Shown piece by piece: positions 3,699-58,405 of a stretch of DNA of 64,000 nt; position 1 is the first letter of the stretch; each line of letters starts with the position of its first letter. The notes under the pieces are model-generated. The model was not told where the DNA came from. It made no database searches and saw nothing but the letters and a program-made list of their open reading frames with translations. A program made the position numbers and the translations under genes. The stretch lies in sequence record NC_070967.1. The stretch is one strand, 5' to 3'.

Positions 3699-3725
3699 GC
3701 GAACCTAACGTCGGATAGCCTTCCT
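3699..3725 (+). promoter_or_regulatory. Bipartite motif copy (GCGAA-N13-AGCCTTCCT)
   Basis: Exact consensus, intergenic. Confidence 0.65.
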
Positions 3726-6915: not shown

Positions 6916-7199
6916 AACTCACGAGGACTGAAGTTTATCAAATCAACGGTAAAGAGACAGCTCATATCGTAGCTAGTAAGTTTGCTATAGATGGATCACT
7001 CTTCAACAAGTTCTATCTTGAAGTCAATGACAAAGTGAGTGCTCCTAGATTGATTAGAGATTATATTGATACTCTACAATTGACAATCCCTGATAAGGTT
7101 GTCTATATTCTTAGCTTAGAGAAAACTGAAATTAGAACTACAGATTTCCGAAAGAAGAATAATGAGCAAGGTAGGAGACCTACTCCAAAATCTGAATGA
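6912..7199 (+). CDS. Hypothetical protein
   Basis: ATGA overlap. Confidence 0.55.
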   Translation: MKLTRTEVYQINGKETAHIVASKFAIDGSLFNKFYLEVNDKVSAPRLIRDYIDTLQLTIPDKVVYILSLEKTEIRTTDFRKKNNEQGRRPTPKSE

Positions 7200-8111: not shown

Positions 8112-8350
8112 ATTACTTTACAGATATAAGCAGTGTCAGAGAAATGCTAGGTAAGCTAGCTGAAGCTCCTGATTCTCAGATTGATGATAAGTTTCGTAAG
8201 GAGCTATCTCATCTCGTTACAATTGAGACTCTAGGTTCACAAGATGTTAAGCGAGCATTAGACATGTGTGTACATTCGTCTCTCGCATCTGACTTTGTAG
8301 TCAATGTTCTAGATATTATCTACAAACAATTGAAGACGTGGAATGAGTGA
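8108..8350 (+). CDS. Hypothetical protein
   Basis: Packed ORF. Confidence 0.6.
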   Translation: MNYFTDISSVREMLGKLAEAPDSQIDDKFRKELSHLVTIETLGSQDVKRALDMCVHSSLASDFVVNVLDIIYKQLKTWNE

Positions 8351-8567
8351 AATCACTTTAGGTCAAGCTGATAAAATCCAACAGATCTGCAAGGATGTTC
8401 AAGTCGAAGGAGCTCACTTTATCTTTAGACTCGCTACTGCCCTTGCAGCAGATGTAGGTTATAGTTTATACCCTGAGTCAGATTATAACTACGGTGCAGA
8501 ATCTGATACGATTCGAAATCTTAGAAGTCTTGCTCAGTCTATGGGTTACAAATTGGAACCTCTTTAA
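8343..8567 (+). CDS. Hypothetical protein
   Basis: Packed ORF. Confidence 0.6.
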   Translation: MSEITLGQADKIQQICKDVQVEGAHFIFRLATALAADVGYSLYPESDYNYGAESDTIRNLRSLAQSMGYKLEPL

Positions 8568-8947
8568 TGGGTAAGATTAATAAATTAGATCGATTCAAAA
8601 TTGTTGAGTCGATCGCAGGCAAGAAGCCTGAGAGACAATACAAGAACTTCAGTCACTACATTTTGACTACCAGAGGAGAGTGCCAGAATTGTTATGGTGC
8701 AGGTAGAGTAGTGGCTCCAGGGGAGAGACCTGACGTTTATGAGGGACATAAAATGTCAAGGAGAATTAACTGTCCTAAGTGTGAAGGTACAGGTCGTGCT
8801 ACTAGTAAAATGCTGACCTCGTACTATGCTAAGACTGTTAGTAATTTTAATACGAGAATGCATAAGTGGAGGGAAGACAGAGCGAAGATCGAGAAAGCGA
8901 TTCTATCTCTATCTCGAGAAGATGCGAAAGTCTTAAAGCTGCTATGA
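8567..8947 (+). CDS. Protein with a DnaJ-type CxxCxGxG zinc finger
   Basis: CQNCYGAG and CPKCEGTG. Confidence 0.65.
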   Translation: MGKINKLDRFKIVESIAGKKPERQYKNFSHYILTTRGECQNCYGAGRVVAPGERPDVYEGHKMSRRINCPKCEGTGRATSKMLTSYYAKTVSNFNTRMHKWREDRAKIEKAILSLSREDAKVLKLL

Positions 8948-8964: not shown

Positions 8965-9207
8965 ATGAGTTTTATCAAGAAAATTGTTAGTTTTCTATTA
9001 AAGCTATTCTATCGAGACTACATTTTCCTTAGATATAAGCCTCTGAAGAATATCACTAGTTCAGAAGTATCGAGATGTATAGATTTGGTACCTATGACAA
9101 CAATCGACAATCCTCTTGATGAGGATGTCCGTATCAAGATTAGTCGAGCTCAGTACGATGAGCTTCCCTATGAGATTTCTAGACACTTTGAGGACTACTA
9201 TGGTTAA
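8965..9207 (+). CDS. Hypothetical protein
   Basis: Packed ORF. Confidence 0.55.
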   Translation: MSFIKKIVSFLLKLFYRDYIFLRYKPLKNITSSEVSRCIDLVPMTTIDNPLDEDVRIKISRAQYDELPYEISRHFEDYYG

Positions 9208-9562
9208 ATTCGGATCAGAACCATTTCTTGAATGTTCGTCGAAAGGAGATAAGAGATTCAGTGCATTCTACGCTCGAATCAAGTCTCGTGACAACAAGTC
9301 GATTGAAGATATTTATCAGTCTTCTAAGATCTTCGAAGATGGTTCTACTGGATTGTCATGGAAAGAGGCTAAAGGTCGTAAGTGTGTTAATCAGACTGAG
9401 GTCAGGAACCTCTACCGTAGACTCTGGATTGAATATCTAGATGAAAATCCTGACCTCGTCGAATTCCTTAAGAGATTTAACGGTTATTCAGATATCTTCG
9501 GTCAAGACGGTCATGCATGTCAAGCTGAAGAGATCTATGATTATATGGCTATGAGATCATGA
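9200..9562 (+). CDS. NADAR-like protein (tentative)
   Basis: FSAFY...SIEDIYQSSK...ENPDL resembles NADAR FSNFY...EHYYQAQK...QNP. Confidence 0.45.
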   Translation: MVKFGSEPFLECSSKGDKRFSAFYARIKSRDNKSIEDIYQSSKIFEDGSTGLSWKEAKGRKCVNQTEVRNLYRRLWIEYLDENPDLVEFLKRFNGYSDIFGQDGHACQAEEIYDYMAMRS

Positions 9563-9804
9563 CAATAAATAGTAATGTATTGCATGCAATTAATGATTTC
9601 AAGAACTATATCATTGAACTTGATAATGGTGTACCGTATCGTCGAGCAGTTCAGATAAGAGATCAAGCTAGTATCTGCAATGATCTGATGAACTATACGA
9701 GTGCCAGTATGTGGGATTCTAATCCTCCTGAGTGGCAGGAATTAGATTCACTAGTGACAATGGTATTTCAAAAGACAAATAAATTGATCTACAAGAGCGA
9801 ATGA
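9559..9804 (+). CDS. Hypothetical protein
   Basis: ATGA overlap. Confidence 0.55.
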   Translation: MTINSNVLHAINDFKNYIIELDNGVPYRRAVQIRDQASICNDLMNYTSASMWDSNPPEWQELDSLVTMVFQKTNKLIYKSE

Positions 9805-9823
9805 GAGGTCGATTAACCTTCCT
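9797..9823 (+). promoter_or_regulatory. Bipartite motif copy (GCGAA-N13-AACCTTCCT)
   Basis: 33 nt upstream of the oxidoreductase ATG. Confidence 0.6.
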
Positions 9824-9856: not shown

Positions 9857-10819
9857 ATGATTATTTTAGGAGCAGGTCTGGCTGGTACATTAGCTGGACT
9901 AATTAATCCTCAGGCTTTGATCCTAGAAGGATCAAAGTCCGTTGACGATATGAGAATGCATAAAGCTGTTCTCAGATTCAGAGACGATAAGATCGGTAAA
10001 TTGACTGGCGTACCTTTTACTAAGATCAAGGTCCGTAAGTCAATTCATATCGACAATAAAGACTATTTGGAATGCACTCCTCGACTAGCGAATATGTATT
10101 CGAAGAAAGTCACTGAAGGATATTCAGATCGTTCGATCTGGAATCTAGAGACTAGCGATCGATTCATTGCTCCTACGAATTTCCATGAGATTCTTATGAG
10201 CTACTGTGGTGATCGTATCAAGTTCAATCATAGTGTCACTGCAATCAAGTCAGATATGATTTATGCAAAAGACGATGTAACGATTGAACGAGATGATGCT
10301 CCTATCGTTAGCACACTACCAATGCCTCTTCTAGGTCGTGTCATTGGTAAGCCATTCGACATCAAGTTCGAATCTAAGCAGATCAAGGTCTCTCGCTACA
10401 AGGTGAAAGGTGCCAAGATCAATCAAACGATCTATTTCCCAGGAACTGAGACACTTGCATATCGTGCATCGATGGTTCAAGATATTCTGATTATCGAGAA
10501 GATTGAAGACGATAATGGAGCAATTAACGATCGAGTTGATGATGCGTATATTATCAATGCGTTCGGTCTAGATACTCTTGATGTTGAATTCATTGAAGAT
10601 GCATCTCAGCTTGGTAAGATCACAGCAATTGATGAGAAGGTTCGTAAGAATTTCATCTTCAATGTGACACGTGATCTGAATGTATACTCATTAGGTAAAT
10701 TTGCATTATGGAAGAATCATATACTGCTCGATGATGTCTATGATGATCTGTTTAAGATCAAGGCATACATGGGTGGTACTGATTATGACCGTATGAAGAG
10801 TAGTTTTGGTAATGCATAG
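9857..10819 (+). CDS. FAD/NAD-dependent oxidoreductase-like protein
   Basis: N-terminal Rossmann IILGAGLAG; C-terminal YSLGKFALW resembles flavoprotein G-R-F-x-W motifs. Confidence 0.7.
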   Translation: MIILGAGLAGTLAGLINPQALILEGSKSVDDMRMHKAVLRFRDDKIGKLTGVPFTKIKVRKSIHIDNKDYLECTPRLANMYSKKVTEGYSDRSIWNLETSDRFIAPTNFHEILMSYCGDRIKFNHSVTAIKSDMIYAKDDVTIERDDAPIVSTLPMPLLGRVIGKPFDIKFESKQIKVSRYKVKGAKINQTIYFPGTETLAYRASMVQDILIIEKIEDDNGAINDRVDDAYIINAFGLDTLDVEFIEDASQLGKITAIDEKVRKNFIFNVTRDLNVYSLGKFALWKNHILLDDVYDDLFKIKAYMGGTDYDRMKSSFGNA

Positions 10820-11093
10820 AAACGTTGAAGAGATCGTTAGATCATCCTTCGACGGATCGAAATGTCCAGTATTTCTGGAGAGACATATGAGAGTCTCTCC
10901 AGATGGTCAAAGACTTGCTCGAATTATTATGAACAAGTTTGATATTTTCGATACGAACGAAGTCTCTTATAATCTCGTAGAATATTACAATCCAGAAGAT
11001 GGTGAGGAATCATTTCTCATTCATATTAAAGATGACAAGGATGTCTATTTTGATATCCAGGTACCTTCTAAGGCTATTTCTAGTTATATCTGA
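10812..11093 (+). CDS. Hypothetical protein
   Basis: Packed ORF. Confidence 0.55.
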   Translation: MHRNVEEIVRSSFDGSKCPVFLERHMRVSPDGQRLARIIMNKFDIFDTNEVSYNLVEYYNPEDGEESFLIHIKDDKDVYFDIQVPSKAISSYI

Positions 11094-11101
11094 AAGTCAT
11101 T

Positions 11102-11674
11102 ATGAACCATATTATGTTAGACTTTGAGACACTCGACACTAAACCTAGTGCAGTCGTGATGTCCGTAGGTATCGTTGCATTTGACCCTCTAGCTAACGAT
11201 ACCATTGAAACCCTCCGTAATGATCCTCACAGAAAATTGTATCTAAATCTGCAATTCGATGATCAGATCAAAAATGGTCGTACTATATCAGAAGATACGA
11301 TCAGATGGTGGTTTGAGGATAAACTTGCAGAAGCTCGATCCAAACTCAAAAGTACTGATCTTGTAAGTACTCCATTAGCTCTGACTCTAATCGATAATTT
11401 TATCCTGAAACATGATATCAGATACAGTTGGGGTAATGGATCTGACTTTGATAATGCGATCTATGACGATCTTCATCGTACGTTTAATCGTCTTAATCGC
11501 ATTAAGTATAAGAACAAGAGATGTGCTCGTACGATCTTCGGTATGACTAATAAAAAGTACAATCCTAAGGATTTTAACATCCTTGAACATGATGCAATTG
11601 AAGACTGTTACTTTCAAATCCTTCGTCTTCAAGACATGTTCAGAAATCATCTCACAGGAATCGATTTCTCATGA
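11102..11674 (+). CDS. DEDD 3'-5' exo(ribo)nuclease, Rv2179c/RNase AS-like
   Basis: MLDFETL, WGNGSDFDNAI, HDAIEDC. Confidence 0.85.
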   Translation: MNHIMLDFETLDTKPSAVVMSVGIVAFDPLANDTIETLRNDPHRKLYLNLQFDDQIKNGRTISEDTIRWWFEDKLAEARSKLKSTDLVSTPLALTLIDNFILKHDIRYSWGNGSDFDNAIYDDLHRTFNRLNRIKYKNKRCARTIFGMTNKKYNPKDFNILEHDAIEDCYFQILRLQDMFRNHLTGIDFS

Positions 11675-12045
11675 TACTATTCATGCATGAAGATGGATCC
11701 TACTACAGTAGTGAAGAGATCTTCCAAGACATTCATACTAATATAGATACTTCAGATGAGGGATCTTTTCTGCTCAAATATCTCGAGAGAGGATTTGAAC
11801 CTCCAGTAGATGCTACGTCTGAGACAAAGTATGAGTATCATCTTGCCAAAATTGGATTTGGTCGATGGATCCGTAACTCGTACGGTCTATGGCAAGAAGA
11901 TAATCCTCATGTTGTACTGAATCCTACTCCGAACGATGAAGGCATTATTGATCATCCACTATTTCCAGACAATCTTAGTGGAACTATAATCAATAGATTG
12001 ATCCAGCACTATCAGTCTAAACTCCCGCAGGTGGAAAATGTATGA
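11671..12045 (+). CDS. Hypothetical protein
   Basis: ATGA overlap. Confidence 0.6.
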   Translation: MILFMHEDGSYYSSEEIFQDIHTNIDTSDEGSFLLKYLERGFEPPVDATSETKYEYHLAKIGFGRWIRNSYGLWQEDNPHVVLNPTPNDEGIIDHPLFPDNLSGTIINRLIQHYQSKLPQVENV

Positions 12046-12340
12046 TGAAGTCTACTCTCGAGTGAGATGTACAAAGTACATTATTCGATATGTTACAGAA
12101 GGATATCCTTCGAGTATTCATCTTGACTATACTGTAGTTCCAGTCGAAGGTGATCTCGTTCATGCTGAGGTTCATACGTCTCACTCTTTTGATATTAAAG
12201 AATTCGTAGTAGGTGCGAGTACATATAATATGTCTCAAATTTTCGATACTCATGAAGGAGCTGAGACTGCAGCTAAGAAGAGAATTCGTAACGACTACGA
12301 AAAGACGAAATCTCTATTAGAACGCTTCAATCTGGCATAA
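12038..12340 (+). CDS. Hypothetical protein
   Basis: Packed ORF. Confidence 0.6.
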   Translation: MYDEVYSRVRCTKYIIRYVTEGYPSSIHLDYTVVPVEGDLVHAEVHTSHSFDIKEFVVGASTYNMSQIFDTHEGAETAAKKRIRNDYEKTKSLLERFNLA

Positions 12341-12378
12341 GCCTTTCTAATTGTCCAGCACCAAATAGGTAATTTATA

Positions 12379-13179
12379 ATGGTAAATAGAGCCGTAGCTA
12401 AAGTACGACTTATTAACAATACTAAGTTCGCAGATTCACTTCTCGTCTTTAGTAAGAATACTCGACTGACAATGTCTCCTGATATGTATGATCAGATTGT
12501 TAATCGAGAAGGTCAATGGACTGATGAAAAGATCAGTGAAGAACTTGACTACATGGCTAACACTATTCCTAGCAGCTGGGAATTTTGCGACTACTACTTC
12601 TTGATCTCAGGTGTGTCAAGAGCATTCACGCATCAGTTTGTTAGGAATCGTACAAACTCTTATGCACAACAGACAATGAGAGTTCTGGATATGTGCGAGT
12701 TTGATTATGTCTTTACTCGACCATATACTGATCTTCCGACGGATCGAGAACCGACTAAGGAAGAATTCATTAATATGTCTTATGACTTCCATACTAATAA
12801 AGCATTGGAAGAAGTCCAGAAGAGATATAATGCTATGATTGAGGATGGAGTACCTGCAGAAGATGCACGAGGCATTCTCCCTACAAACATCGCTACCAAC
12901 ATTCTTGCGAAGATCAATCTTCGTACGTTTGCTGATATGGCTAAGTCTCGTACAGGTGGACGTACTCAAGGTGAGTACCAGATGATCATGAATCAGATGG
13001 TTGATGAAGTTTTGAAGGTACATCCATGGGCTGAGAAATTCTTCTTTAAGCAGGGTCGCGATTACTTCAAGGATCTCGAAGATCTATGTGCTGAAATCTT
13101 TGGGTCTGGTACAACCAAAGAGAATCTGCATACCAAGGGTCGATTCTTGAAAATTATCGACAAGATGCGTAAAGGTTAA
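12379..13179 (+). CDS. thyX: Divergent ThyX-family flavin-dependent thymidylate synthase-like protein
   Basis: ISGVSRAFTHQFVR, EDARGILP and NLR are typical of ThyX; RHRx7S reads RNRx7T. Confidence 0.8.
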   Translation: MVNRAVAKVRLINNTKFADSLLVFSKNTRLTMSPDMYDQIVNREGQWTDEKISEELDYMANTIPSSWEFCDYYFLISGVSRAFTHQFVRNRTNSYAQQTMRVLDMCEFDYVFTRPYTDLPTDREPTKEEFINMSYDFHTNKALEEVQKRYNAMIEDGVPAEDARGILPTNIATNILAKINLRTFADMAKSRTGGRTQGEYQMIMNQMVDEVLKVHPWAEKFFFKQGRDYFKDLEDLCAEIFGSGTTKENLHTKGRFLKIIDKMRKG

Positions 13180-13181
13180 TA

Positions 13182-13367
13182 ATGACAGAGAGATTTTATC
13201 GTACTAAACCTTCATCTGCTATCACACGTCATGGTCGAGTAGTCTACAAACTTGTAAAAGTCTCTGTGAGTGATGACTTTGATTATGCTAAGTTTGAATC
13301 AGATACTCCTGATTTTTCATCGTGGGTCGATGAATCTAAGTCGACTCCTATATTTGGAACTAACTGA
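13182..13367 (+). CDS. Hypothetical protein
   Basis: Packed ORF. Confidence 0.5.
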   Translation: MTERFYRTKPSSAITRHGRVVYKLVKVSVSDDFDYAKFESDTPDFSSWVDESKSTPIFGTN

Positions 13368-13600
13368 TGAAAGCGACTGAATTCTGTTATTGGCTTCAAG
13401 GTTATTTTGAGATTAATGATCAGTCATCTACTTCAACTCCTCCAACTCTAAATTCATCTCAAGTCGAGGTGATTAAACGTCATCTTCAACTCGTATTCGT
13501 TCATGATATTGATCCTAGTTATCCTGCAGAACAGCAGAGTAAGTTAAATTCAATTCATAACGATACGCAAAAGACGACAGGTCCTCTCATGAGGTGCTAA
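13367..13600 (+). CDS. Hypothetical protein (FCYWLQGYFE motif)
   Basis: Packed ORF; the motif is familiar from large-phage hypotheticals. Confidence 0.65.
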   Translation: MKATEFCYWLQGYFEINDQSSTSTPPTLNSSQVEVIKRHLQLVFVHDIDPSYPAEQQSKLNSIHNDTQKTTGPLMRC

Positions 13601-13912
13601 ATGCGTTACAGTTATAATCTTGGTGAGACGTTTGACCGTGCTCGCAAGAGACGTAAATTTGAAGACGAGGTTATGGCTATTGCAGGACCTCGTCAGTATC
13701 GAACTAAAAAATTGACTCCTTGTGAGCAGTATATCTGTAGAGTATGTAATGGTACCAATCAAGTCGAAGAGACAGGTGACTTACATCGATCTGCAGGAAT
13801 TATTCCTTGTCCTCATATGCACTGTGTAGGAGGCATTGTCGTAGCTGAAACTATTGAAATCAAACGTAGAGTTAGAGTAAAAGCTATCTCTCGGAGATCT
13901 GAAGATGAATAA
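13601..13912 (+). CDS. Hypothetical Cys-containing protein
   Basis: CRVCNG...CPHMHC. Confidence 0.55.
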   Translation: MRYSYNLGETFDRARKRRKFEDEVMAIAGPRQYRTKKLTPCEQYICRVCNGTNQVEETGDLHRSAGIIPCPHMHCVGGIVVAETIEIKRRVRVKAISRRSEDE

Positions 13913-14129
13913 AGCTAATCAAGTCCTCAAAAGATTGAGTGAAGACTATGATGTTCTGGAACCTTGTACTAAGGACCAGTTCTATACTGCAGTTAATACT
14001 GCTCATGGAGAAGGGTCGTATACGTCCGTCGAAGATGAGTACGGTAACATTGACTGTAAAAGAGATGACCTCGTGATTGCATCTTATGCAAAGGGTCAAG
14101 AGAAGTACCTTGGGTACATCTATAAGTGA
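13905..14129 (+). CDS. Hypothetical protein
   Basis: Packed ORF. Confidence 0.6.
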   Translation: MNKANQVLKRLSEDYDVLEPCTKDQFYTAVNTAHGEGSYTSVEDEYGNIDCKRDDLVIASYAKGQEKYLGYIYK

Positions 14130-14133
14130 CATC

Positions 14134-14361
14134 ATGACAAATGTTGATCAGAGTAAGATTGTAGTTATTGACTACACTAATTGGGAAGGTAAGAGATCAG
14201 TTCGAGAGATTATCCCGACTGGTGAACTCAAGTTCAAGAGTACTCTTTATCATCCAGAAATGCAATGGATTCTAGAAGCAATCGATGTGCGTAAAGGTGA
14301 AATTCGTCACTTTGCACTGACAGACATCCATTCTATTAACGCTTATAAGGAATCGAAATAA
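14134..14361 (+). CDS. Stand-alone WYL-like domain protein
   Basis: IDYTNWEG..S.R.I.P...QWILEAID..KGEIRHFAL pattern. Confidence 0.7.
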   Translation: MTNVDQSKIVVIDYTNWEGKRSVREIIPTGELKFKSTLYHPEMQWILEAIDVRKGEIRHFALTDIHSINAYKESK

Positions 14362-14630
14362 TGAGCAGAGCTCAACAAGTCATTAAGACTCTTACTGAGA
14401 ATGAAAATCCACTGTACAAGAATATCGTTATGCATGTTCGTGACGGTGACTTCGATAAGTTTCAGTCAGCACTAGGTCTTCCTCTTGACCCTTCAAGTGA
14501 AGGTTATGCTAAGGGTAAGGAACTCTATGACCTACTCTCTAATGGCGCAGCTGATGATACGACTTATTCTACGACAGCAGAAGTCGTTGACAAGTTCATG
14601 ACTGACAATACTGGACTGTTCAATAAGTGA
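14361..14630 (+). CDS. Hypothetical protein
   Basis: TAATG overlap; N-terminus resembles that of ORF 13905 (A.QV.K.L.E). Confidence 0.6.
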   Translation: MSRAQQVIKTLTENENPLYKNIVMHVRDGDFDKFQSALGLPLDPSSEGYAKGKELYDLLSNGAADDTTYSTTAEVVDKFMTDNTGLFNK

Positions 14631-14905
14631 TCTACGTCTTTGTCAAGACTCCAATGCATGCATGGCTTCAGGTACCTACTGAGTCTGTCGTAGGTGCAGT
14701 AGGTTCACTCTCTAAGATTGGACCTACATGGAGCTATCTTGAGAAGGAGAATGATGCTGATATGTTTATTAAAGCATATCAGCTCACCATCGATAATCTT
14801 CATTACTATATTTTTGATCATGAACTCATGTTCTGGAATGAAGATGATTTTGAACTATTCCAACAGATGCATACTACATTAAATACTAAAGAGAACATTG
14901 CGTGA
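14627..14905 (+). CDS. Hypothetical protein
   Basis: GTGA overlap. Confidence 0.5.
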   Translation: MIYVFVKTPMHAWLQVPTESVVGAVGSLSKIGPTWSYLEKENDADMFIKAYQLTIDNLHYYIFDHELMFWNEDDFELFQQMHTTLNTKENIA

Positions 14906-15084
14906 AGTTATCAGATAATGAGATCGCAGAGTTGAACGCTCTGATTCGTAAATTTGTCCTCCCTATTAATAAGAAGGAGGTCACTAGGCATAACTCAAAT
15001 TACGAGTGGCTTAGAAAGAATATCAGGATTAAGAATTCTGATAGATTGACTCCACGTATTATCGAACTATTGAAATTGAATTAA
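14902..15084 (+). CDS. Hypothetical protein
   Basis: GTGA overlap. Confidence 0.5.
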   Translation: MKLSDNEIAELNALIRKFVLPINKKEVTRHNSNYEWLRKNIRIKNSDRLTPRIIELLKLN

Positions 15085-15093
15085 TTTGATTCA

Positions 15094-15132
15094 GCCGTAC
15101 AGGAGTAAGGATAGCCTTCTCTCTTGTACGGC
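15094..15132 (+). promoter_or_regulatory. Hairpin containing a variant motif (CCGTA-N13-AGCCTTCTC)
   Basis: GCCGTACAGGAG / CTCTTGTACGGC stem enclosing the downstream box. Confidence 0.45.
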
Positions 15133-15149
15133 AATTCTTAGGCATGTAA

Positions 15150-15872
15150 ATGACAACGAATACTAGTGAGAAATCTCTGAAGAATGACATTGCTGTTAGT
15201 TCTCCAGATAAGAAGAGACTGACATTCGCTATCGACTTCGATGGCGTTATTTATCCATACAAGAATGGATATAACAATGGGCTCATGTCTGAAGATCCCA
15301 TTCCAGGTGCTCGAGATGCACTGATTCACCTTCGCAATGAAGGTCATAAGATCATAATCAACACCTGTCGAGGTGCTGTAGAAGATCTTAAATCTTACTT
15401 CAATCTCCATGACATTCCATTCGATGAAATCAATGAGAACTCAGATAACTATGAGGACTCAAATAAGGGTAAACCTTTTGCTGATTATTACATCGATGAT
15501 CGAGCTATTCGATTCGAAGGCGATTGGTCCCTCACATTAGATGAGGTACGTCGCAAGAGATTCCCATGGTTCATTAAGTCTGAGAATAAGATTGCAGCAG
15601 ATCTTATGAATGACTCAGCAGAACTGTATCGACAGCGTAATCTTGTTTATGGCGACTCATACCGTCGTCACGGTGAGATTATGGCTAAACTATTTCCTAA
15701 TGGCGTAACCTTGAAGACAGCCGAAGATTTTAATCGATTCGGTATCGTTAACATGAAGATTTCTAAGGTTACAAGATATTGTCAGAATTTTGAGAAGGGT
15801 GGTCATCTTGACTCAGTGATCGATGATGGTGTTTATACCTTCATGCTTGCTGAGCTTGATATGTCCAAGTAG
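15150..15872 (+). CDS. HAD phosphatase fused to a helical DUF6378/Nmad1-like domain
   Basis: N-terminal IDFDGVI...YIDDRA (HAD motifs I and IV); C-terminal RN..YGDSY...K..RY...H.DS..D..VY. Confidence 0.65.
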   Translation: MTTNTSEKSLKNDIAVSSPDKKRLTFAIDFDGVIYPYKNGYNNGLMSEDPIPGARDALIHLRNEGHKIIINTCRGAVEDLKSYFNLHDIPFDEINENSDNYEDSNKGKPFADYYIDDRAIRFEGDWSLTLDEVRRKRFPWFIKSENKIAADLMNDSAELYRQRNLVYGDSYRRHGEIMAKLFPNGVTLKTAEDFNRFGIVNMKISKVTRYCQNFEKGGHLDSVIDDGVYTFMLAELDMSK

Positions 15873-16253: not shown

Positions 16254-16751
16254 ATGACTAAATCAATTAAAGTTAAAGTAATTAATGAATCTACTACCAA
16301 TGCTCTTCCAGCTTATGAGACTGAAGGTTCCGCAGGTATGGACCTCAGAGCTCATATCAATGGCGACAGTCCATTCTCGAAGATTGTTAAGATCGAGAAC
16401 AAAGAAGAGCATGTAATTGATATCGCTCCAGGTGAGCTACGTCTCATCTCTACAGGACTCAAAGTTGAAATCCCTGTAGGTTATGAACTTCAAATTCGTC
16501 CACGTAGTGGACTAGCTTATAAGAATATGGTAACAGTACTGAATAGTCCTGGTACCATTGACTCTGATTATCGAGGAGTAGTCGGAGTACTTTTATTCAA
16601 TCATCATCCTAGTACAGTTTTCAGAGTCAGGAATGGTGAGCGTATCGCTCAGGCAGTTTTTGCTGAGTATGTACGTGCTGAATATGATAATGTAACTGAT
16701 CTGAGTGCCACTGATCGAGGAGAAGGTGGATTCGGAAGTACTGGTAAATAA
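16254..16751 (+). CDS. dut: Trimeric dUTPase
   Basis: [36 protein letters not shown]. Confidence 0.97.
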
Positions 16752-20123: not shown

Positions 20124-20180
20124 ACGAATTTGAGGTCCTAAAGCCTTCCTTGTCAGGTCGGTTTTAGGACCTTTTATTTT
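20124..20180 (+). terminator. Terminator hairpin with a bipartite motif copy (ACGAA-N13-AGCCTTCCT) in its stem and loop
   Basis: AGGTCCTAAA / TTTAGGACCT stem, then TTTATTTT. Confidence 0.65.
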
Positions 20181-27408: not shown

Positions 27409-27435
27409 GCGAAGTTAGGTGCGATAAACCTTCCT
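27409..27435 (+). promoter_or_regulatory. Bipartite motif copy (GCGAA-N13-AACCTTCCT)
   Basis: Upstream of the SSB gene. Confidence 0.6.
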
Positions 27436-32909: not shown

Positions 32910-33542
32910 ATGGATATTGCATTATTTGGTCTAATTGACTATACACTCTTCAGCTGGGTACTTTTCGCAGTGCTCATCGGATTTGTAGGTATCATTGAAG
33001 AGAATGAACTACCTATTCCAGCATTCATTGTATTTATTGTAGGTCTTACCGCACTTCAGTACTATACAGATCTGAAAGCTTGGACATACGTCTACGAGAA
33101 TCCTTGGTACTTCCTCTTGTATGTAGTTATCTACATCATAGCTGGTATCGTATGGTCTCATGTTAAATGGGTACTTTATCTTCAAGAGATCAAGCGTTAT
33201 CATCCTACGAGCATCAAAGAAGCAGAGGCTCACGCACTCGTAGTTGAAAAACGTAATGAAGAGTATCGTAGTACTCATCCTGAGTACAAATGTCAGTCTG
33301 TTGATGTTAATAAAGAAGCGATCGAATATACTACTAAGAGATTCCGATTGAAGTCTCTTCCTCCGAAGGCTTCTGAAAAGAAGGTAGCTATCACATCATG
33401 GTTGATGTACTGGCCTATCTCTGCACTATGGACAGTTGTTGATAATTTCGTACTTAATCTATTCAACAATTTGTTCGAACTGATTCGTGCTAGCTATCAG
33501 CAGGTATCGGATCGTATATTCGCTGATTTTACGACCAAGTGA
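32910..33542 (+). CDS. Multi-pass membrane protein
   Basis: Several hydrophobic segments; GGAG RBS. Confidence 0.75.
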   Translation: MDIALFGLIDYTLFSWVLFAVLIGFVGIIEENELPIPAFIVFIVGLTALQYYTDLKAWTYVYENPWYFLLYVVIYIIAGIVWSHVKWVLYLQEIKRYHPTSIKEAEAHALVVEKRNEEYRSTHPEYKCQSVDVNKEAIEYTTKRFRLKSLPPKASEKKVAITSWLMYWPISALWTVVDNFVLNLFNNLFELIRASYQQVSDRIFADFTTK

Positions 33543-33560
33543 GGCTCGATTAGCCTTCCT
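33534..33560 (+). promoter_or_regulatory. Bipartite motif copy (ACCAA-N13-AGCCTTCCT)
   Basis: 29 nt upstream of the FEN gene. Confidence 0.55.
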
Positions 33561-35564: not shown

Positions 35565-36019
35565 TGAAGAAGAATGTATTAGTAGGATTAGATCATAGGA
35601 TCCTTACAGGTCTAGATAGTCTTGTCCTACTCTTATGCACCAGACTACAAATCAAGAAAATCCATCTTCAGAGACTCCTGGTTTGTATTTATTGTGTCTT
35701 ATTGCATAAAATTGGATTTTCTGTTATAGGCATCCTTGTTCTACAAGGTTTACAAGAATTGTCCCTGTTAAATATGGGGACGAAATCATACAACAATTAC
35801 ATCGAGGGAACTCGATTTGAGCCATTCAATATTTATGTCAGGCTCATCTCCTTCCTATTCTGTATATATTATACTGCATATTCATTCGCTCTTCATGAGA
35901 TCACTACAATTAATGTACTTCAGAAGATTATTCTGGAAGTGTACGTGTATAGTGTATTCTGTCGAGACTACAACGGTACGACGCAAGTAGAGTACTGGGA
36001 CGAGACGAAGTTCGCCTGA
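35564..36019 (+). CDS. Hydrophobic hypothetical protein
   Basis: TAATG-coupled ORF filling the gap. Confidence 0.45.
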   Translation: MKKNVLVGLDHRILTGLDSLVLLLCTRLQIKKIHLQRLLVCIYCVLLHKIGFSVIGILVLQGLQELSLLNMGTKSYNNYIEGTRFEPFNIYVRLISFLFCIYYTAYSFALHEITTINVLQKIILEVYVYSVFCRDYNGTTQVEYWDETKFA

Positions 36020-36031
36020 ATAAGCCTTCTC
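36005..36031 (+). promoter_or_regulatory. Bipartite motif variant (ACGAA-N13-AGCCTTCTC)
   Basis: Same spacing. Confidence 0.5.
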
Positions 36032-41546: not shown

Positions 41547-41573
41547 GCGAAGGAGCGTCCCTTAAGCCTTCCT
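41547..41573 (+). promoter_or_regulatory. Bipartite motif copy (GCGAA-N13-AGCCTTCCT)
   Basis: Exact consensus right after a terminator, ahead of the vWA gene. Confidence 0.65.
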
Positions 41574-46410: not shown

Positions 46411-46991
46411 ATCTAATATTCTTAGATTTCGATGGAGTTCTGAATTCTCAGGACTCCTATCTTGTCCGCCACCATTTATGGAATAGTAGTCAACGAGTAG
46501 AATCGATAGCTTGTCCAGATATTACTTCTGTCAGACTTGTAGAGATCCTAGTTGATGCTATTGATGCAAGAATCGTAATTTCGTCATCCTGGAGGAGTGG
46601 AACATCGATTGAAGATCTAAGATTAATTCTTAGAAATGAGTTCTCATTTAATTACTCAAATAAAGTGATTGGTAAGACTAGACCTCATTTCTACGACAAA
46701 CCTAATGAGATCAGAGGTGACCAGATTCAGCACTGGATGAAAATGTATGAGTCTGGAAATTTCATCTTAGATCTTATTGATCTTGATAATAATTATCTAT
46801 ATAATGATAATAAGAATTATAATAATATAGATAATTATATTATTCTTGACGACGATTCAGATATGCTTGAATGTCAGATGGATCACTTTGTAAGAACTGA
46901 TTTTACATCAGGATTCAATTTCAAGTCTCTACAAGCTGGATTACGGATTGTAGGGATGTCTGAACAGGACTTATTCAAGTCAGCGAAGTAG
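46407..46991 (+). CDS. HAD-superfamily protein, Swiss-Army-Knife RNA-repair type
   Basis: FLDFDGVL, ISSSWR, RGDQI..W, YIILDD. Confidence 0.85.
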   Translation: MNLIFLDFDGVLNSQDSYLVRHHLWNSSQRVESIACPDITSVRLVEILVDAIDARIVISSSWRSGTSIEDLRLILRNEFSFNYSNKVIGKTRPHFYDKPNEIRGDQIQHWMKMYESGNFILDLIDLDNNYLYNDNKNYNNIDNYIILDDDSDMLECQMDHFVRTDFTSGFNFKSLQAGLRIVGMSEQDLFKSAK

Positions 46992-47009
46992 AGGCCGGAG
47001 AGCCTTCCT
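46983..47009 (+). promoter_or_regulatory. Bipartite motif copy (GCGAA-N13-AGCCTTCCT)
   Basis: Exact consensus heading the unit that contains the topoisomerase genes. Confidence 0.65.
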
Positions 47010-51025: not shown

Positions 51026-51925
51026 ATGAACGATTTTAATGTAATCCTTACAGGTTCTGCTGGTTACATTGGAAGCATCGTTGGCGATCGTCTACTGAAA
51101 TCCAATTCGATTGATTTGGAGACAGTAGACGTCGTCTCTGACGTTCTTCCAGTAGATACTATCTTAACTGAAGTTGGTAATCTATCCAACAAGTCATCTG
51201 ATGTCCTTGTTCATCTTGCTGCAAAGATCTCAGTAGTCGAATCTCATAAGCAAGCTCGTCAGTACTACGAGAACAATTGTAGTCAATTCCATGAGATGTT
51301 GAATGATCGTGGTAACTATTTCAAGCATGTTATCTATGCATCCTCTTTCTCGATTTATGATTCTGATTTGAGTATCTATCCTCAGTCTGTCTATGCATCC
51401 ACCAAATACGAAGGTGAATGGATTCTCAAGAGATGGGCTCAGATGACGAATCGAGATTATTCAATCCTACGATTTGCCAATCCAATTGGCGTTAGTCAAT
51501 CACTTCACTCTCATATTGCAGACCGTATTCAATCGAGCTATGCTAATGTTATGTGGAGACTTGCTCGATGCAAATTACTAGGTGAGATGTTCTACATTCA
51601 TGATCTACCTGGTATGACACGTGATTTTTATCCCGTTGAATGGATTGGATACGCTATCGATTGGATCGCGAAGAATGGTCCCGTAGGTACTGTAAATCTA
51701 GGTAGTGGTAAGCCTGTATCGGTTATGGATCTTCTTCAGCATATCTGTGAGAAGTATAATATCAGTTACAAATATGTTCTACCACCTGAAGGTACTGCTC
51801 TAGGTATTACCAAGAAGGTTGATGTATTCAAAGAAGGTATTCCTGATTTTGATACATACGATCCAGTTGTATATTGTGAGAAGTCGTTTTTAGATTATCT
51901 ATCGTTGATTCAGAACGCGAACTAA
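51026..51925 (+). CDS. NAD-dependent epimerase/dehydratase (GalE-like extended SDR)
   Basis: TGSAGYIGS, HLAA, YASTK, LRFANPIG. Confidence 0.88.
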   Translation: MNDFNVILTGSAGYIGSIVGDRLLKSNSIDLETVDVVSDVLPVDTILTEVGNLSNKSSDVLVHLAAKISVVESHKQARQYYENNCSQFHEMLNDRGNYFKHVIYASSFSIYDSDLSIYPQSVYASTKYEGEWILKRWAQMTNRDYSILRFANPIGVSQSLHSHIADRIQSSYANVMWRLARCKLLGEMFYIHDLPGMTRDFYPVEWIGYAIDWIAKNGPVGTVNLGSGKPVSVMDLLQHICEKYNISYKYVLPPEGTALGITKKVDVFKEGIPDFDTYDPVVYCEKSFLDYLSLIQNAN

Positions 51926-51943
51926 CGCTAGATTAGCCTTCCT
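51917..51943 (+). promoter_or_regulatory. Bipartite motif copy (GCGAA-N13-AGCCTTCCT)
   Basis: Exact consensus heading the glycosyltransferase unit. Confidence 0.65.
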
Positions 51944-56186: not shown

Positions 56187-56915
56187 ATGGCTCGTTGCTA
56201 TGTAGGATGTAGTGGATTCTCGTATAATCATTGGAATGATAACTTCTACCCTGCAGGAGTAGAGCGGTTTTCATTTTATACGAGTCAATTTGATTCATTA
56301 GAGATCAATAGTTCATTCTACAGATTACCTAGTGCAAGCGTATTCTACTCATGGTATCGACGATCACCTGCTCATATGACATTCACTGTGAAAGCTCCTC
56401 AGACGATTACTCATCGTAAGAAGCTAAAGGATGCTGACGATATAGTTCAGAGATTCTATGAGAATACTCTTGAGCTAGGTGACAAGATGAAATGTGTCTT
56501 ATGGCAGTTACCTCCTAATTTCTCCATAAGAATGTATGATCGTGTCAAGAAATTCTGTGACAGTATTCATAACAGATTTCCTAATTCAGCATTCGAGTTC
56601 AGACATCCTTCATGGATGCAGACTCACGTACCTCAACTTCTATCTGCATACGACTTTGAGTTTGTACGTACAGATTTTCATAAATACGTAAATGTATCCA
56701 TGGATGGATCCTCGTCTAAATTCCAGTACTATCGATTACATGGACCTACAGGTCAGTATCACGGTCGCTACACTGATGAGTTTCTTGAGAATATAGCTGA
56801 TCGTCTAACGGATGGATCATTCGTATTCTTCGATAATGATAGTGGAGGTCAAGCTCCTAGGGATGCTAAAAGATTAATCAAAATTCTAGAGACAAGAAAT
56901 GAAATTAAATTATAG
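56187..56915 (+). CDS. DUF72 (YecE-like) TIM-barrel protein
   Basis: GCSGFSY..W...FYP, EINSSFYRLP, FTVKAP..ITH, LWQLPP, EFRHPSW, RLHG, FFDND. Confidence 0.92.
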   Translation: MARCYVGCSGFSYNHWNDNFYPAGVERFSFYTSQFDSLEINSSFYRLPSASVFYSWYRRSPAHMTFTVKAPQTITHRKKLKDADDIVQRFYENTLELGDKMKCVLWQLPPNFSIRMYDRVKKFCDSIHNRFPNSAFEFRHPSWMQTHVPQLLSAYDFEFVRTDFHKYVNVSMDGSSSKFQYYRLHGPTGQYHGRYTDEFLENIADRLTDGSFVFFDNDSGGQAPRDAKRLIKILETRNEIKL

Positions 56916-57445: not shown

Positions 57446-57472
57446 GCGAATCTAGCGTGGGAAAGCCTTCCT
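57446..57472 (+). promoter_or_regulatory. Bipartite motif copy (GCGAA-N13-AGCCTTCCT)
   Basis: Exact consensus 30 nt before the pyruvyl transferase ATG. Confidence 0.65.
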
Positions 57473-57502: not shown

Positions 57503-58405
57503 ATGTTTGACATTAATGTTGATAATCCTAACCTTGCTGCGATCCTGGAATCGTATCGTGGAAAGAAGATTGACTACTTTCATAATAATGGTAACGCAGG
57601 TGATGCGATCATCGCAGTAGGTACGTATCAGACTTTTGATAAGTTTGGTATTGACTACTCTGCTTACAATAAACCTCGTGCTCATAAGCAAACGAGCGAT
57701 ACTGTTTTCATCGCAGGTGGTGGTAATCTCGTAAGTTATTATCCTGATTGTGAGAAGGCTATCAAGGAAGCTATGAAGAAGTACGATAGAATCATCGTTC
57801 TCCCTCATTCTATCCGAGGTAAAGAAGATCTTCTGAAGTCAATGGATAAGCGTTTCACGATTTTTACTCGTGAGGTACCTTCTGATAATTATGTAAGATC
57901 AGTGGTCAATTCAGATGTGACTGTTCATCTGGAACATGATATGGCATTCTTTATGGATGTCAAAGCTATCTTTGAAGATAATTCTATTAAAGATAAAGTC
58001 GAGAAATTCTATCGTAACAAGCTCCGATCTGTTAATCGTCTACCTGATGACATTATCGGTAAAGACAACTACTGCTTCCGTGAAGATGTTGAGGCAGTTG
58101 TTAATGTGAAGTCTTCTCAGAACGTAGATATTTCCTACGTATTCGAACGAGGACTTGATCGTACTAATGCTTTTATTGCAGCAGCAGCATTCTTGAAATA
58201 TATTGATGCTTCAAAGTCAATTACTACAAGTCGTCTTCATACAGGCATTGGTGCAGCTATGTGCGGTACTCCTGCTACGGTATTTGATAATTCATATGGC
58301 AAGATTTCTAGTATCTACGAATTCTCAATGAAGGATCGTGGATACAACTTCCGTGTAGGTCTCATTGATGAAATGAGATCAATTATCGAACGAATTGAGG
58401 ACTGA
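57503..58405 (+). CDS. Polysaccharide pyruvyl transferase-like protein (EpsI/EpsO type)
   Basis: GNAGD, GGGNL, PHSI, TRE, HDMAF, TSRLH, DNSYGK. Confidence 0.85.
   Translation: MFDINVDNPNLAAILESYRGKKIDYFHNNGNAGDAIIAVGTYQTFDKFGIDYSAYNKPRAHKQTSDTVFIAGGGNLVSYYPDCEKAIKEAMKKYDRIIVLPHSIRGKEDLLKSMDKRFTIFTREVPSDNYVRSVVNSDVTVHLEHDMAFFMDVKAIFEDNSIKDKVEKFYRNKLRSVNRLPDDIIGKDNYCFREDVEAVVNVKSSQNVDISYVFERGLDRTNAFIAAAAFLKYIDASKSITTSRLHTGIGAAMCGTPATVFDNSYGKISSIYEFSMKDRGYNFRVGLIDEMRSIIERIED

Follow-up and report, generated by a model that had tools for sequence, protein, structure and literature searches.

A phage cassette of a UDP-galactopyranose mutase-like flavoprotein, a divergent ThyX and a phosphatase-helical protein, and its possible role in thymidine hypermodification

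Three cassette proteins of Rhizobium phage RHph_Y65

The DNA analyzed here, a stretch of 64,000 nucleotides from sequence record NC_070967.1 (the window; record coordinates equal window coordinates plus 62000), contains a 6-kb stretch that is 100% identical to Rhizobium phage RHph_Y65 (NC_070967/MN988525; 206.8 kb; Kleczkowskaviridae) and in which gp191, gp196 and gp205 encode a flavoprotein, a divergent ThyX and a phosphatase fused to a helical domain, respectively. Relatives of these genes recur together in phages as a cassette, for which we tentatively propose a role in thymidine hypermodification. All genes under discussion are on the + strand, where an earlier note on this DNA had placed them.

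The first gene of the cassette, gp191 (9857..10819, + strand), encodes a 320-residue flavin adenine dinucleotide (FAD)-type Rossmann flavoprotein whose fold resembles that of UDP-galactopyranose mutases (UGMs). At the sequence level it matches only phrog_4828 (1.5e-75), which is annotated as of 'unknown function', and no Pfam or NCBIfam family (no GLF, Amino_oxidase or NAD_binding_8). It possesses a GAGLAG motif at residues 5-10 and a conserved Glu24. Its relatives, which form at least 773 clusters, share an N-terminal GAGxAG and many invariant Arg, Lys, His and Tyr residues; the invariant positions include G5, G7, G10, E24, H35 and R40 and are accompanied by a SLGRF..W.N.LLDD motif. The AlphaFold2 model, with a predicted local distance difference test score (pLDDT) of 87.5, is best matched by the structures of UGMs at Z scores of 21-22 (Z 22 over 308 of the 320 residues), followed by those of protoporphyrinogen oxidases (Z 19-20) and monoamine oxidases (Z 18). 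The GxGxxG motif, the acidic residue that follows it and the two-domain fold of UGM/GR2 flavoproteins are all found in gp191, and the stand-alone flavoprotein that the earlier note had recognized at 9857 is borne out by the GAGLAG motif and the UGM-like model. The RefSeq name of gp191, polysaccharide deacetylase, is supported by neither sequence nor fold. With UGMs, gp191 also shares a C-terminal GRF..W/Y...D-type motif, but it is only ~13-16% identical to them in sequence, lacks a Pfam GLF match and is 150-190 residues shorter. In UGMs, N5 of the reduced flavin is a covalent catalyst acting on the sugar, as it is in ThyX with a methylene group. A further likeness is that to TrmFO, RlmFO and MnmEG, the folate/FAD-dependent uracil methylases of nucleic acids (cited in PMC8989533), which are also Rossmann-type flavoproteins and move a one-carbon unit to C5 of uracil via a flavin N5 iminium. 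They differ from gp191 by acting on RNA and by their larger size, and no specific sequence or structural match of gp191 to any of the three was found; MnmC, which is a different enzyme, is a generic fold match only.

The second gene, gp196 (12379..13179, + strand), encodes a 266-residue protein, hereafter ThyX*, that matches Pfam Thy1 (PF02511) over the whole domain (4.7e-31; 108.5 bits versus a cut-off of 24.8) and also scores above the cut-off of TIGR02170. According to the earlier note, conserved residues of the catalytic region are altered in this protein, and a profile alignment to ThyX of T. maritima (TM0449; residue numbers are PDB chain numbers minus a 12-residue tag) confirms both of the motifs concerned. 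Residues 62-69, TIPSSWEF (12562..12585, + strand), align with GHETPFEH, in which His53 and His59 are replaced by Ile and Phe, respectively, while residues 89-99, RNRTNSYAQQT (12643..12675, + strand), align with the ThyX signature RHRIASYNELS, in which His79 is replaced by Asn and Ser88 by Thr. In the same alignment, RHRIASYNELSGRY of T. maritima ThyX pairs with RNRTNSYAQQTMRV of gp196, RADSHAQWE pairs with RTGGRTQGE, where His178 is replaced by Arg, and Tyr91 is replaced by Val. Arg78, Arg80, Arg90, Arg147 and Arg174, the residues that hold deoxyuridine monophosphate (dUMP) in T. maritima ThyX, are all retained; their counterparts R89, R91, R101, R164 and R191 of gp196 are invariant across the clade, and the equivalents of Q75/Q180/E182 are retained as well. 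His53 of T. maritima ThyX stacks on folate/NADPH.

The replacements are a property of the whole clade, where the RHRx7S signature reads R[T/S/N]R...T/S/A and rarely RHR. Among 107 distinct cassette ThyX sequences, the position of His53 is I, V or L in every one, that of His79 is mostly T, S or N and that of Tyr91 is V or A, and the variant residues are fixed or nearly so in a clade of 3,497 clusters at 90% identity (E up to 1e-5; best at 57-60% identity). The ThyX of Bacillus phage BCE1 retains GH..S..EH and RHR, and that of a Stygiolobus virus retains RHR. Compared with canonical ThyX, ThyX* has the same domain but differs in its R[N/T/S]Rx7T signature, in the replaced histidines and Tyr91, in its restriction to phages and in having a UGM-like flavoprotein as its constant companion. 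A ThyX by fold and profile that lacks the signature motif and the active-site histidines, it is most aptly described as a divergent subfamily of ThyX with an obligate partner. Given that several family hallmark residues are replaced, ThyX* might instead be dead or repurposed, for example as a dUMP- or flavin-binding regulator or as an inhibitor of host thymidylate metabolism. We consider this very improbable: the replaced positions do not vary among thousands of sequences at 57-65% identity, which also keep the substrate-binding arginines, as is usual for an enzyme that is active with changed chemistry and not for one in decay.

The third gene, gp205 (15150-15872, + strand), encodes a protein of two domains. 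Residues 22-135 (15213..15554, + strand) form a HAD phosphatase domain of the small capless BT0820/AfhF type, with a DFDGV motif I at residues 29-33 (D29 and D31), an IDD motif IV and a Rossmannoid fold. The best structural match of this domain is AfhF (9iqw; Z 10.3), the D-arabinose 1,5-diphosphate phosphatase of phage HY126, followed by 1xpj (Z 9.9), BT0820 (2obb; Z 7.8) and the phosphatase domain of T4 Pnkp (Z 7.8). Despite the shared fold and DxD motif, gp205 is ~20% identical to AfhF and BT0820-type proteins and its scores are below the curated cut-offs of Hydrolase_6 (E 0.0027; 18.2 bits versus 27) and, by far, of NCBIfam BT0820 (30.4 versus 165); it matches phrog_1238 at 8.9e-27. Its RefSeq name, phosphoheptose isomerase, is supported by neither sequence nor fold. 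Residues 149-238 (15594..15863, + strand; pLDDT >90) form a DUF6378-like four-helix domain that is homologous to the small open reading frame (ORF) found after ThyX* in most cassettes and to the C-terminus of gp59 of phage PB1 (38% identity, E 2e-10), the N-terminus of which is a PNKP-type HAD phosphatase. The helical domain alone has no Pfam match at E up to 10. Of nine stand-alone relatives, seven match DUF6378 (PF19905) over the full profile at 17-23 bits, below its cut-off of 27.1, and DUF6378 (0.94) is the annotation of the nearest clusters in the ESM Atlas, where DUF1599 ranks lower. A fold search with the helical domain yielded nothing beyond generic helical bundles, whose Z of 6-7 is at noise level for helices. 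The earlier note had described gp205 as a HAD phosphatase fused to a DUF6378/Nmad1-like domain; the HAD domain and its fusion to a helical domain stand, while the DUF6378 assignment stays below the Pfam threshold.

Linkage of the cassette genes across phages

Co-occurrence of the three genes across phages, which the earlier note had named as a test, is strongly positive. The flavoprotein profile fetched 80 IMG/VR loci. In 75 of them, ThyX* is encoded at a distance of 0-3 kb downstream and on the same strand, and in many cases the stop and start codons overlap; ~60 of these 75 have a homologue of the helical domain after ThyX*. Of the five loci without ThyX*, two end with the contig, one has a GIY-YIG endonuclease inserted before the contig end, and two (L069 and L074) have no ThyX within 4-6 kb. 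In L074 (5655-9280), which represents a variant cassette with no ThyX within 5 kb, the flavoprotein gene is directly followed by genes for a HAD_PNKP protein, an RNase_T exonuclease and a large carbamoyltransferase. A search with the ThyX profile added 69 loci to these; the flavoprotein is present in all 47 of those with at least 4 kb of upstream sequence, and the helical ORF in 62 of the 69. After ThyX and ahead of the helical ORF there is usually a gene for a PNKP-type HAD phosphatase, either separate from that ORF or fused to it, and at least a dozen HAD-helical fusions are independent of each other. Long stop-to-stop ORFs around the flavoprotein and ThyX* were inspected for informative domain fusions, of which none was found. 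The pairwise distances among ThyX and among flavoprotein sequences are correlated (r 0.69, 107 pairs).

Among cultured phages, those with ThyX relatives and those with the flavoprotein are nearly identical sets, numbering, respectively, 291 and 292 for Pseudomonas, 27 and 27 for Escherichia, 9 and 9 for Serratia and 6 and 6 for Xanthomonas. The Pseudomonas carriers are Pbunavirus (~290) and the Escherichia carriers are Wifcevirus. The order in PB1 is gp68 ... gp61, gp59, gp58, gp57, where gp68, gp61 and gp59 correspond to gp191, gp196 and gp205 of RHph_Y65 (hereafter Y65) and the flavoprotein-ThyX pair is ahead of PolIII alpha. The same flavoprotein-ThyX order ahead of PolIII alpha is found in the podophages Cronobacter Ss1 and Vibrio VA-RY-3, the latter having after ThyX a gene with a weak DUF3310 match only. 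A sulfotransferase-family gene, the product of which might activate a hydroxyl group, lies two genes after the ThyX variant in Vibrio phage vB_ValP_VA-RY-3 (fetched locus 8172-8927). In cellular genomes, the family is found on only 6 contigs of metagenome-assembled genomes among 185,579 species genomes. The flavoprotein is apparently absent from the near-identical phages TM39 and TM21B. TM39 was rejected as a counter-example: the record of RHph_TM39 (MN988559) covers the genome only in part, and a run of N (locus 6981-7000) stands in place of gp188-gp195 of Y65, so that gene content cannot be compared reliably with TM39 at this run.

The common gene order is DUF932/helicase, flavoprotein, ThyX*, HAD, DUF6378-like, RNase_T exonuclease and PolIII alpha, and most cassettes are inside one conserved replication module with the exonuclease and PolIII alpha. 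The cassette genes might accordingly have no functional link and be neighbors by inheritance of a replication/nucleotide-metabolism module, in which case gp191, gp196 and gp205, which are spread over 6 kb in Y65 with ten other ORFs between them, would be three unrelated early genes. Such an explanation seems unlikely to us. Y65 differs from the PolIII alpha carriers in its replication apparatus, which has PolA, and comparison of PB1 with all ORFs of the whole Y65 genome yielded clear matches only for the flavoprotein (1e-56), ThyX (6e-35) and the helical domain (1e-7), but not for the polymerase or the helicases, which argues that the set has moved between unrelated phages as a functional unit. 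The overlap of stop and start codons in many loci and the several independent phosphatase-helical fusions also speak against mere neighborhood. The HAD domain of Y65 gp205 is from a different subfamily than the PNKP-type phosphatases used by most other cassettes, which suggests that it is the combination of a phosphatase and a helical protein that matters. These results show that a phage-specific, horizontally mobile cassette with near-obligatory linkage exists in >100 distinct environmental phage contigs and ~360 cultured phages. No description of the cassette was found in the searchable literature, nor anything specific on DUF6378/DUF1599 or on phage ThyX with hydroxymethyl products.

Neighboring genes and a shared upstream element

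Upstream of many genes of the window lies the element GCGAA-N14-GCCTTC, for which 27 matches at up to 2 mismatches were found versus 6.95 expected, and of which ~14 copies are intergenic and on the + strand. The copy before the flavoprotein gene (9797..9821, + strand), with an ACCTTC half and 1 mismatch, is 36 nucleotides upstream of the start codon; that before gp205 (15095..15119, + strand) has 2 mismatches; and that before the ThyX gene (12322..12346, + strand; ACGCT-N14-GCCTTT) is degenerate and outside the set with up to 2 mismatches. The shared motif that the earlier note had described before the three genes is therefore real, but it is distributed genome-wide and has nothing specific to the trio, so the element was rejected as the mark of one regulon for gp191, gp196 and gp205. 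In the form GCGAA-N14-GCCTTC(CTT), it lies 30-60 nucleotides upstream of many + strand genes (62-86, 2677-2701, 3699-3723, 9797-9821, 15095-15119, 20124-20148, 27409-27433, 33534-33558, 36005-36029, 41547-41571, 46983-47007, 51917-51941 and 57446-57470 of the window) and is probably a phage-specific promoter class for the early/middle region.

Genes for nucleotide metabolism are found near the cassette genes and elsewhere in the Y65 genome, which has ~39% G+C. Downstream of gp205 lies a gene for a trimeric dUTPase (16254..16751, + strand), which supplies dUMP, followed by those for the small and large subunits of ribonucleotide reductase. The dUTPase is intact, as the earlier note had held (Pfam 2.2e-24). 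Y65 also encodes its own dCMP deaminase and dihydrofolate reductase, and no second thymidylate synthase is annotated anywhere in its genome. ThyX yields no dihydrofolate, and the occurrence of a dihydrofolate reductase (record 609-1124, outside the window) beside a ThyX-type sole thymidylate synthase is an unusual pairing. Between gp191 and gp196 lies gp193 (11102..11674, + strand; PF16473, 1.3e-26), which encodes a DEDD-type 3'-5' exonuclease (Rv2179c-like) and is mentioned for context only; the RNase_T exonuclease that follows the cassette in modules of the PolIII alpha type is not a close homologue of it. Of two small ORFs near the cassette genes (9116-9562 and 14077-14361), one has a partial match to NADAR (a DarT1-associated antitoxin; 4.6e-10) and the other a WYL-like domain (phrog_3715).

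Elsewhere in Y65, a divergent PurA-like adenylosuccinate synthetase (record 10186-11436), the best PDB matches of which are only at 1e-17, and an HD-domain YfbR-like 5'-deoxynucleotidase (record 148349-149020), which adjoins the PolA gene, form a pair reminiscent of 2-aminoadenine (Z-base) phages. Examined as a hint of a 2-aminoadenine genome, the PurA-like gene has only weak similarity to ordinary adenylosuccinate synthetases. The window also includes genes for an NAD-dependent sugar epimerase/dehydratase (51026-51925), a DUF72 protein (56187-56915) and a polysaccharide pyruvyl transferase (57503-58405); its sugar-handling genes could serve surface glycans or, speculatively, sugar modification of DNA. 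No public sequencing runs that match the region or ThyX alone are listed.

A possible route to hypermodified thymidine

The DNA of Pbunavirus F8 and 14-1, which was long held to be unmodified, resists enzymes with TG-containing sites, and about one quarter of its thymidine is replaced in the TG context by new nucleosides of 362 and 390 Da, which the authors read as a tetrose sugar-alcohol derivative and a cyclic aldopentose derivative; according to the authors, Pbunavirus carries none of the previously implicated hypermodification genes, and ThyX is not mentioned in their text (bioRxiv 10.1101/2025.03.31.646159). Native nanopore sequencing of Pbunavirus fails and is rescued by amplification (2026 preprint, 10.64898/2026.07.08.737226), while E. 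coli Wifcevirus resists restriction without a known protection mechanism (PMC11990801). Both Pbunavirus and Wifcevirus encode the flavoprotein and the ThyX variant, to which PB1 adds the phosphatase-helical protein. By arithmetic, the two masses correspond to 5-hydroxymethyl-deoxyuridine (5-hmdU) plus tetritol or pentose minus water, and they fit equally thymidine plus C4H8O4 or deoxyuridine (dU) with a C-linked five- or six-carbon sugar unit: 5-(tetrahydroxypentyl)-dU (C14H22N2O9) is 362.3 Da, and a hexose C-glycoside or pentosyl-oxymethyl-dU is 390.3 Da.

Known hypermodification derived from 5-hmdU is started by a ThyA-family hydroxymethylase and continued by a DNA 5-hmdU kinase and transferases (PMC8989533). 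No ThyA-family dUMP hydroxymethylase, DNA 5-hmdU kinase or transferase is annotated in Y65 or PB1, for which no dedicated profile search was made, and neither the kinase nor the transferases are among the genes shared by PB1 and Y65 in the comparison of all ORFs. The ThyA-family dUMP/dCMP hydroxymethylases, with which the known routes to hypermodified thymidine and cytidine begin, include T4 gp42 and SPO1 gp29. They resemble ThyX*, in the role that we propose for it, as relatives of thymidylate synthase recruited for a 5-substituted pyrimidine nucleotide, but their fold is unrelated to that of ThyX* and they are flavin-free.

Our results support a module whose genes function together and whose core is flavin-dependent chemistry at the C5 position of dUMP. 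We propose, with a probability of roughly 45%, that gp191, gp196 and gp205 constitute a flavin-dependent pyrimidine C5 module that feeds thymidine hypermodification. Because the phosphate- and uracil-binding arginines are all retained, ThyX* would still bind dUMP, to C5 of which it would add a carbon unit by flavin chemistry. The folate/NADPH site of canonical ThyX appears to be remodelled by the loss of His53, His59, His79 and His178, so that ThyX* would work only together with the UGM-like flavoprotein. The product may be, or may feed, a 5-substituted deoxyuridine, either a precursor of the 5-hmdU type or a polyol/sugar adduct, and the phosphatase and the helical protein may act downstream, e.g., by dephosphorylating a sugar-phosphate or nucleotide intermediate. 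The endpoint would be hypermodified thymidine in virion DNA, as measured in F8 and 14-1; plain deoxythymidine monophosphate (dTMP) might be made as well. Hypermodification is the most attractive reading of the module, given its sugar-related structural affinities (UGM acts on a sugar nucleotide, and AfhF is the best match of the phosphatase) and the sugar-type adducts of Pbunavirus. The proposal in the earlier note of a ThyX product other than dTMP is partly supported: it agrees with the modified thymidine of Pbunavirus and the unexplained restriction resistance of Wifcevirus, but Y65 also has good grounds to need plain dTMP.

A more specific form of this proposal, to which we assign a low probability, is that ThyX* and the UGM-like flavoprotein jointly alkylate C5 of dUMP in a reductive reaction that uses an aldose or its phosphate in lieu of methylene-tetrahydrofolate. 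As in UGM, the ring-opened sugar would be bound to N5 of the flavin as an iminium; as in ThyX, C5 of dUMP would be activated and would attack this iminium, and the HAD phosphatase would then cleave off the sugar phosphate.

Several points weigh against a role of the cassette in hypermodification. Pbunavirus has dozens of other unassigned genes. Moreover, with the modification specific to TG and three quarters of T left canonical, some step must recognize the sequence on DNA, and none of the cassette proteins is an obvious candidate for it. The residues that bind dUMP are retained in ThyX*, which at 103.9 bits also passes the NCBI ThyX equivalog cut-off of TIGR02170 (87.9). Y65 is AT-rich, encodes dCMP deaminase, dUTPase, ribonucleotide reductase and dihydrofolate reductase and has no other annotated thymidylate synthase, so that synthesis of plain dTMP is its simplest need; nothing specific was found in the literature on Y65, including any analysis of its DNA. 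Part of the co-occurrence, and possibly much of it, is shared ancestry, since most carriers share the PolIII alpha module, and the flavoprotein loci L069 and L074 have no ThyX* nearby. Finally, gene 70 of Gordonia phage Suzy (fetched locus 202-1263) encodes a 'ThyX-like' protein with RTR for RHR and no His at the position of His53, and no flavoprotein match is listed for Gordonia phages. This protein may be a second, independent ThyX variant, and it indicates that loss of the signature is not unique to the ThyX* clade. The figure for hypermodification is held below one half because of such points, among them the TG specificity, the retained dUMP binding and the need of Y65 for dTMP.

The main alternative is a two-component thymidylate synthase that makes dTMP only, which we regard as possible and worth serious consideration. 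Without the histidines of the NADPH/folate site, ThyX* would need the UGM-like flavoprotein as a dedicated NAD(P)H-driven reductase or flavin donor; the phosphatase and the helical protein would belong to the replication module as an enzyme of its own, for the nucleotide pool or for end healing, and the Pbunavirus modification would come from other genes. Beyond the TIGR02170 score, the five retained arginines, the dUMP supply line of AT-rich Y65 and the canonical three quarters of Pbunavirus T, this explanation is consistent with the asymmetry of the linkage, where ThyX* always has the flavoprotein with it (47 of 47 loci) and the flavoprotein lacks ThyX* twice, and with the direct binding of NAD(P)H by UGMs of the eukaryote type, two structures of which (5vwt and 5vwu) are among the best matches of gp191. 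However, canonical phage ThyX enzymes act alone, and a UGM-type fold is odd for a simple reductase. Synthesis of dTMP alone also leaves unexplained the recurrent fusion or adjacency of a phosphatase and a DUF6378-like domain after ThyX* and the transfer of exactly these genes, and it leaves no candidate genes for the Pbunavirus modification or the restriction resistance of Wifcevirus.

There is a realistic chance that the cassette is the entry point to a new hypermodification pathway. Its range extends from E. coli Wifcevirus to phages of Xanthomonas, Serratia, Vibrio and Cronobacter and to a family of large rhizobiophages, in addition to the environmental phage contigs, and it includes Pbunavirus, which is among the phages most used therapeutically against Pseudomonas aeruginosa. 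For the thymidine hypermodification of Pbunavirus, which was found in 2025 with no genes assigned in the preprint, PB1 gp68, gp61 and gp59 constitute a short list of candidates. If the cassette makes dTMP only, it would still represent an unrecognized two-component form of ThyX with an obligate flavoprotein partner. If sugar alkylation as outlined above were true, the flavoenzyme pair, which thousands of environmental phages carry, this rhizobiophage among them, would be of a new type and would produce a whole class of sugar-alkylated thymidines at the level of nucleotides. Were modified thymidine to be the product of the cassette, DNA hypermodification would gain its first ThyX-based, flavin-dependent entry, and the cassette could be a genomic marker for modified phage genomes.

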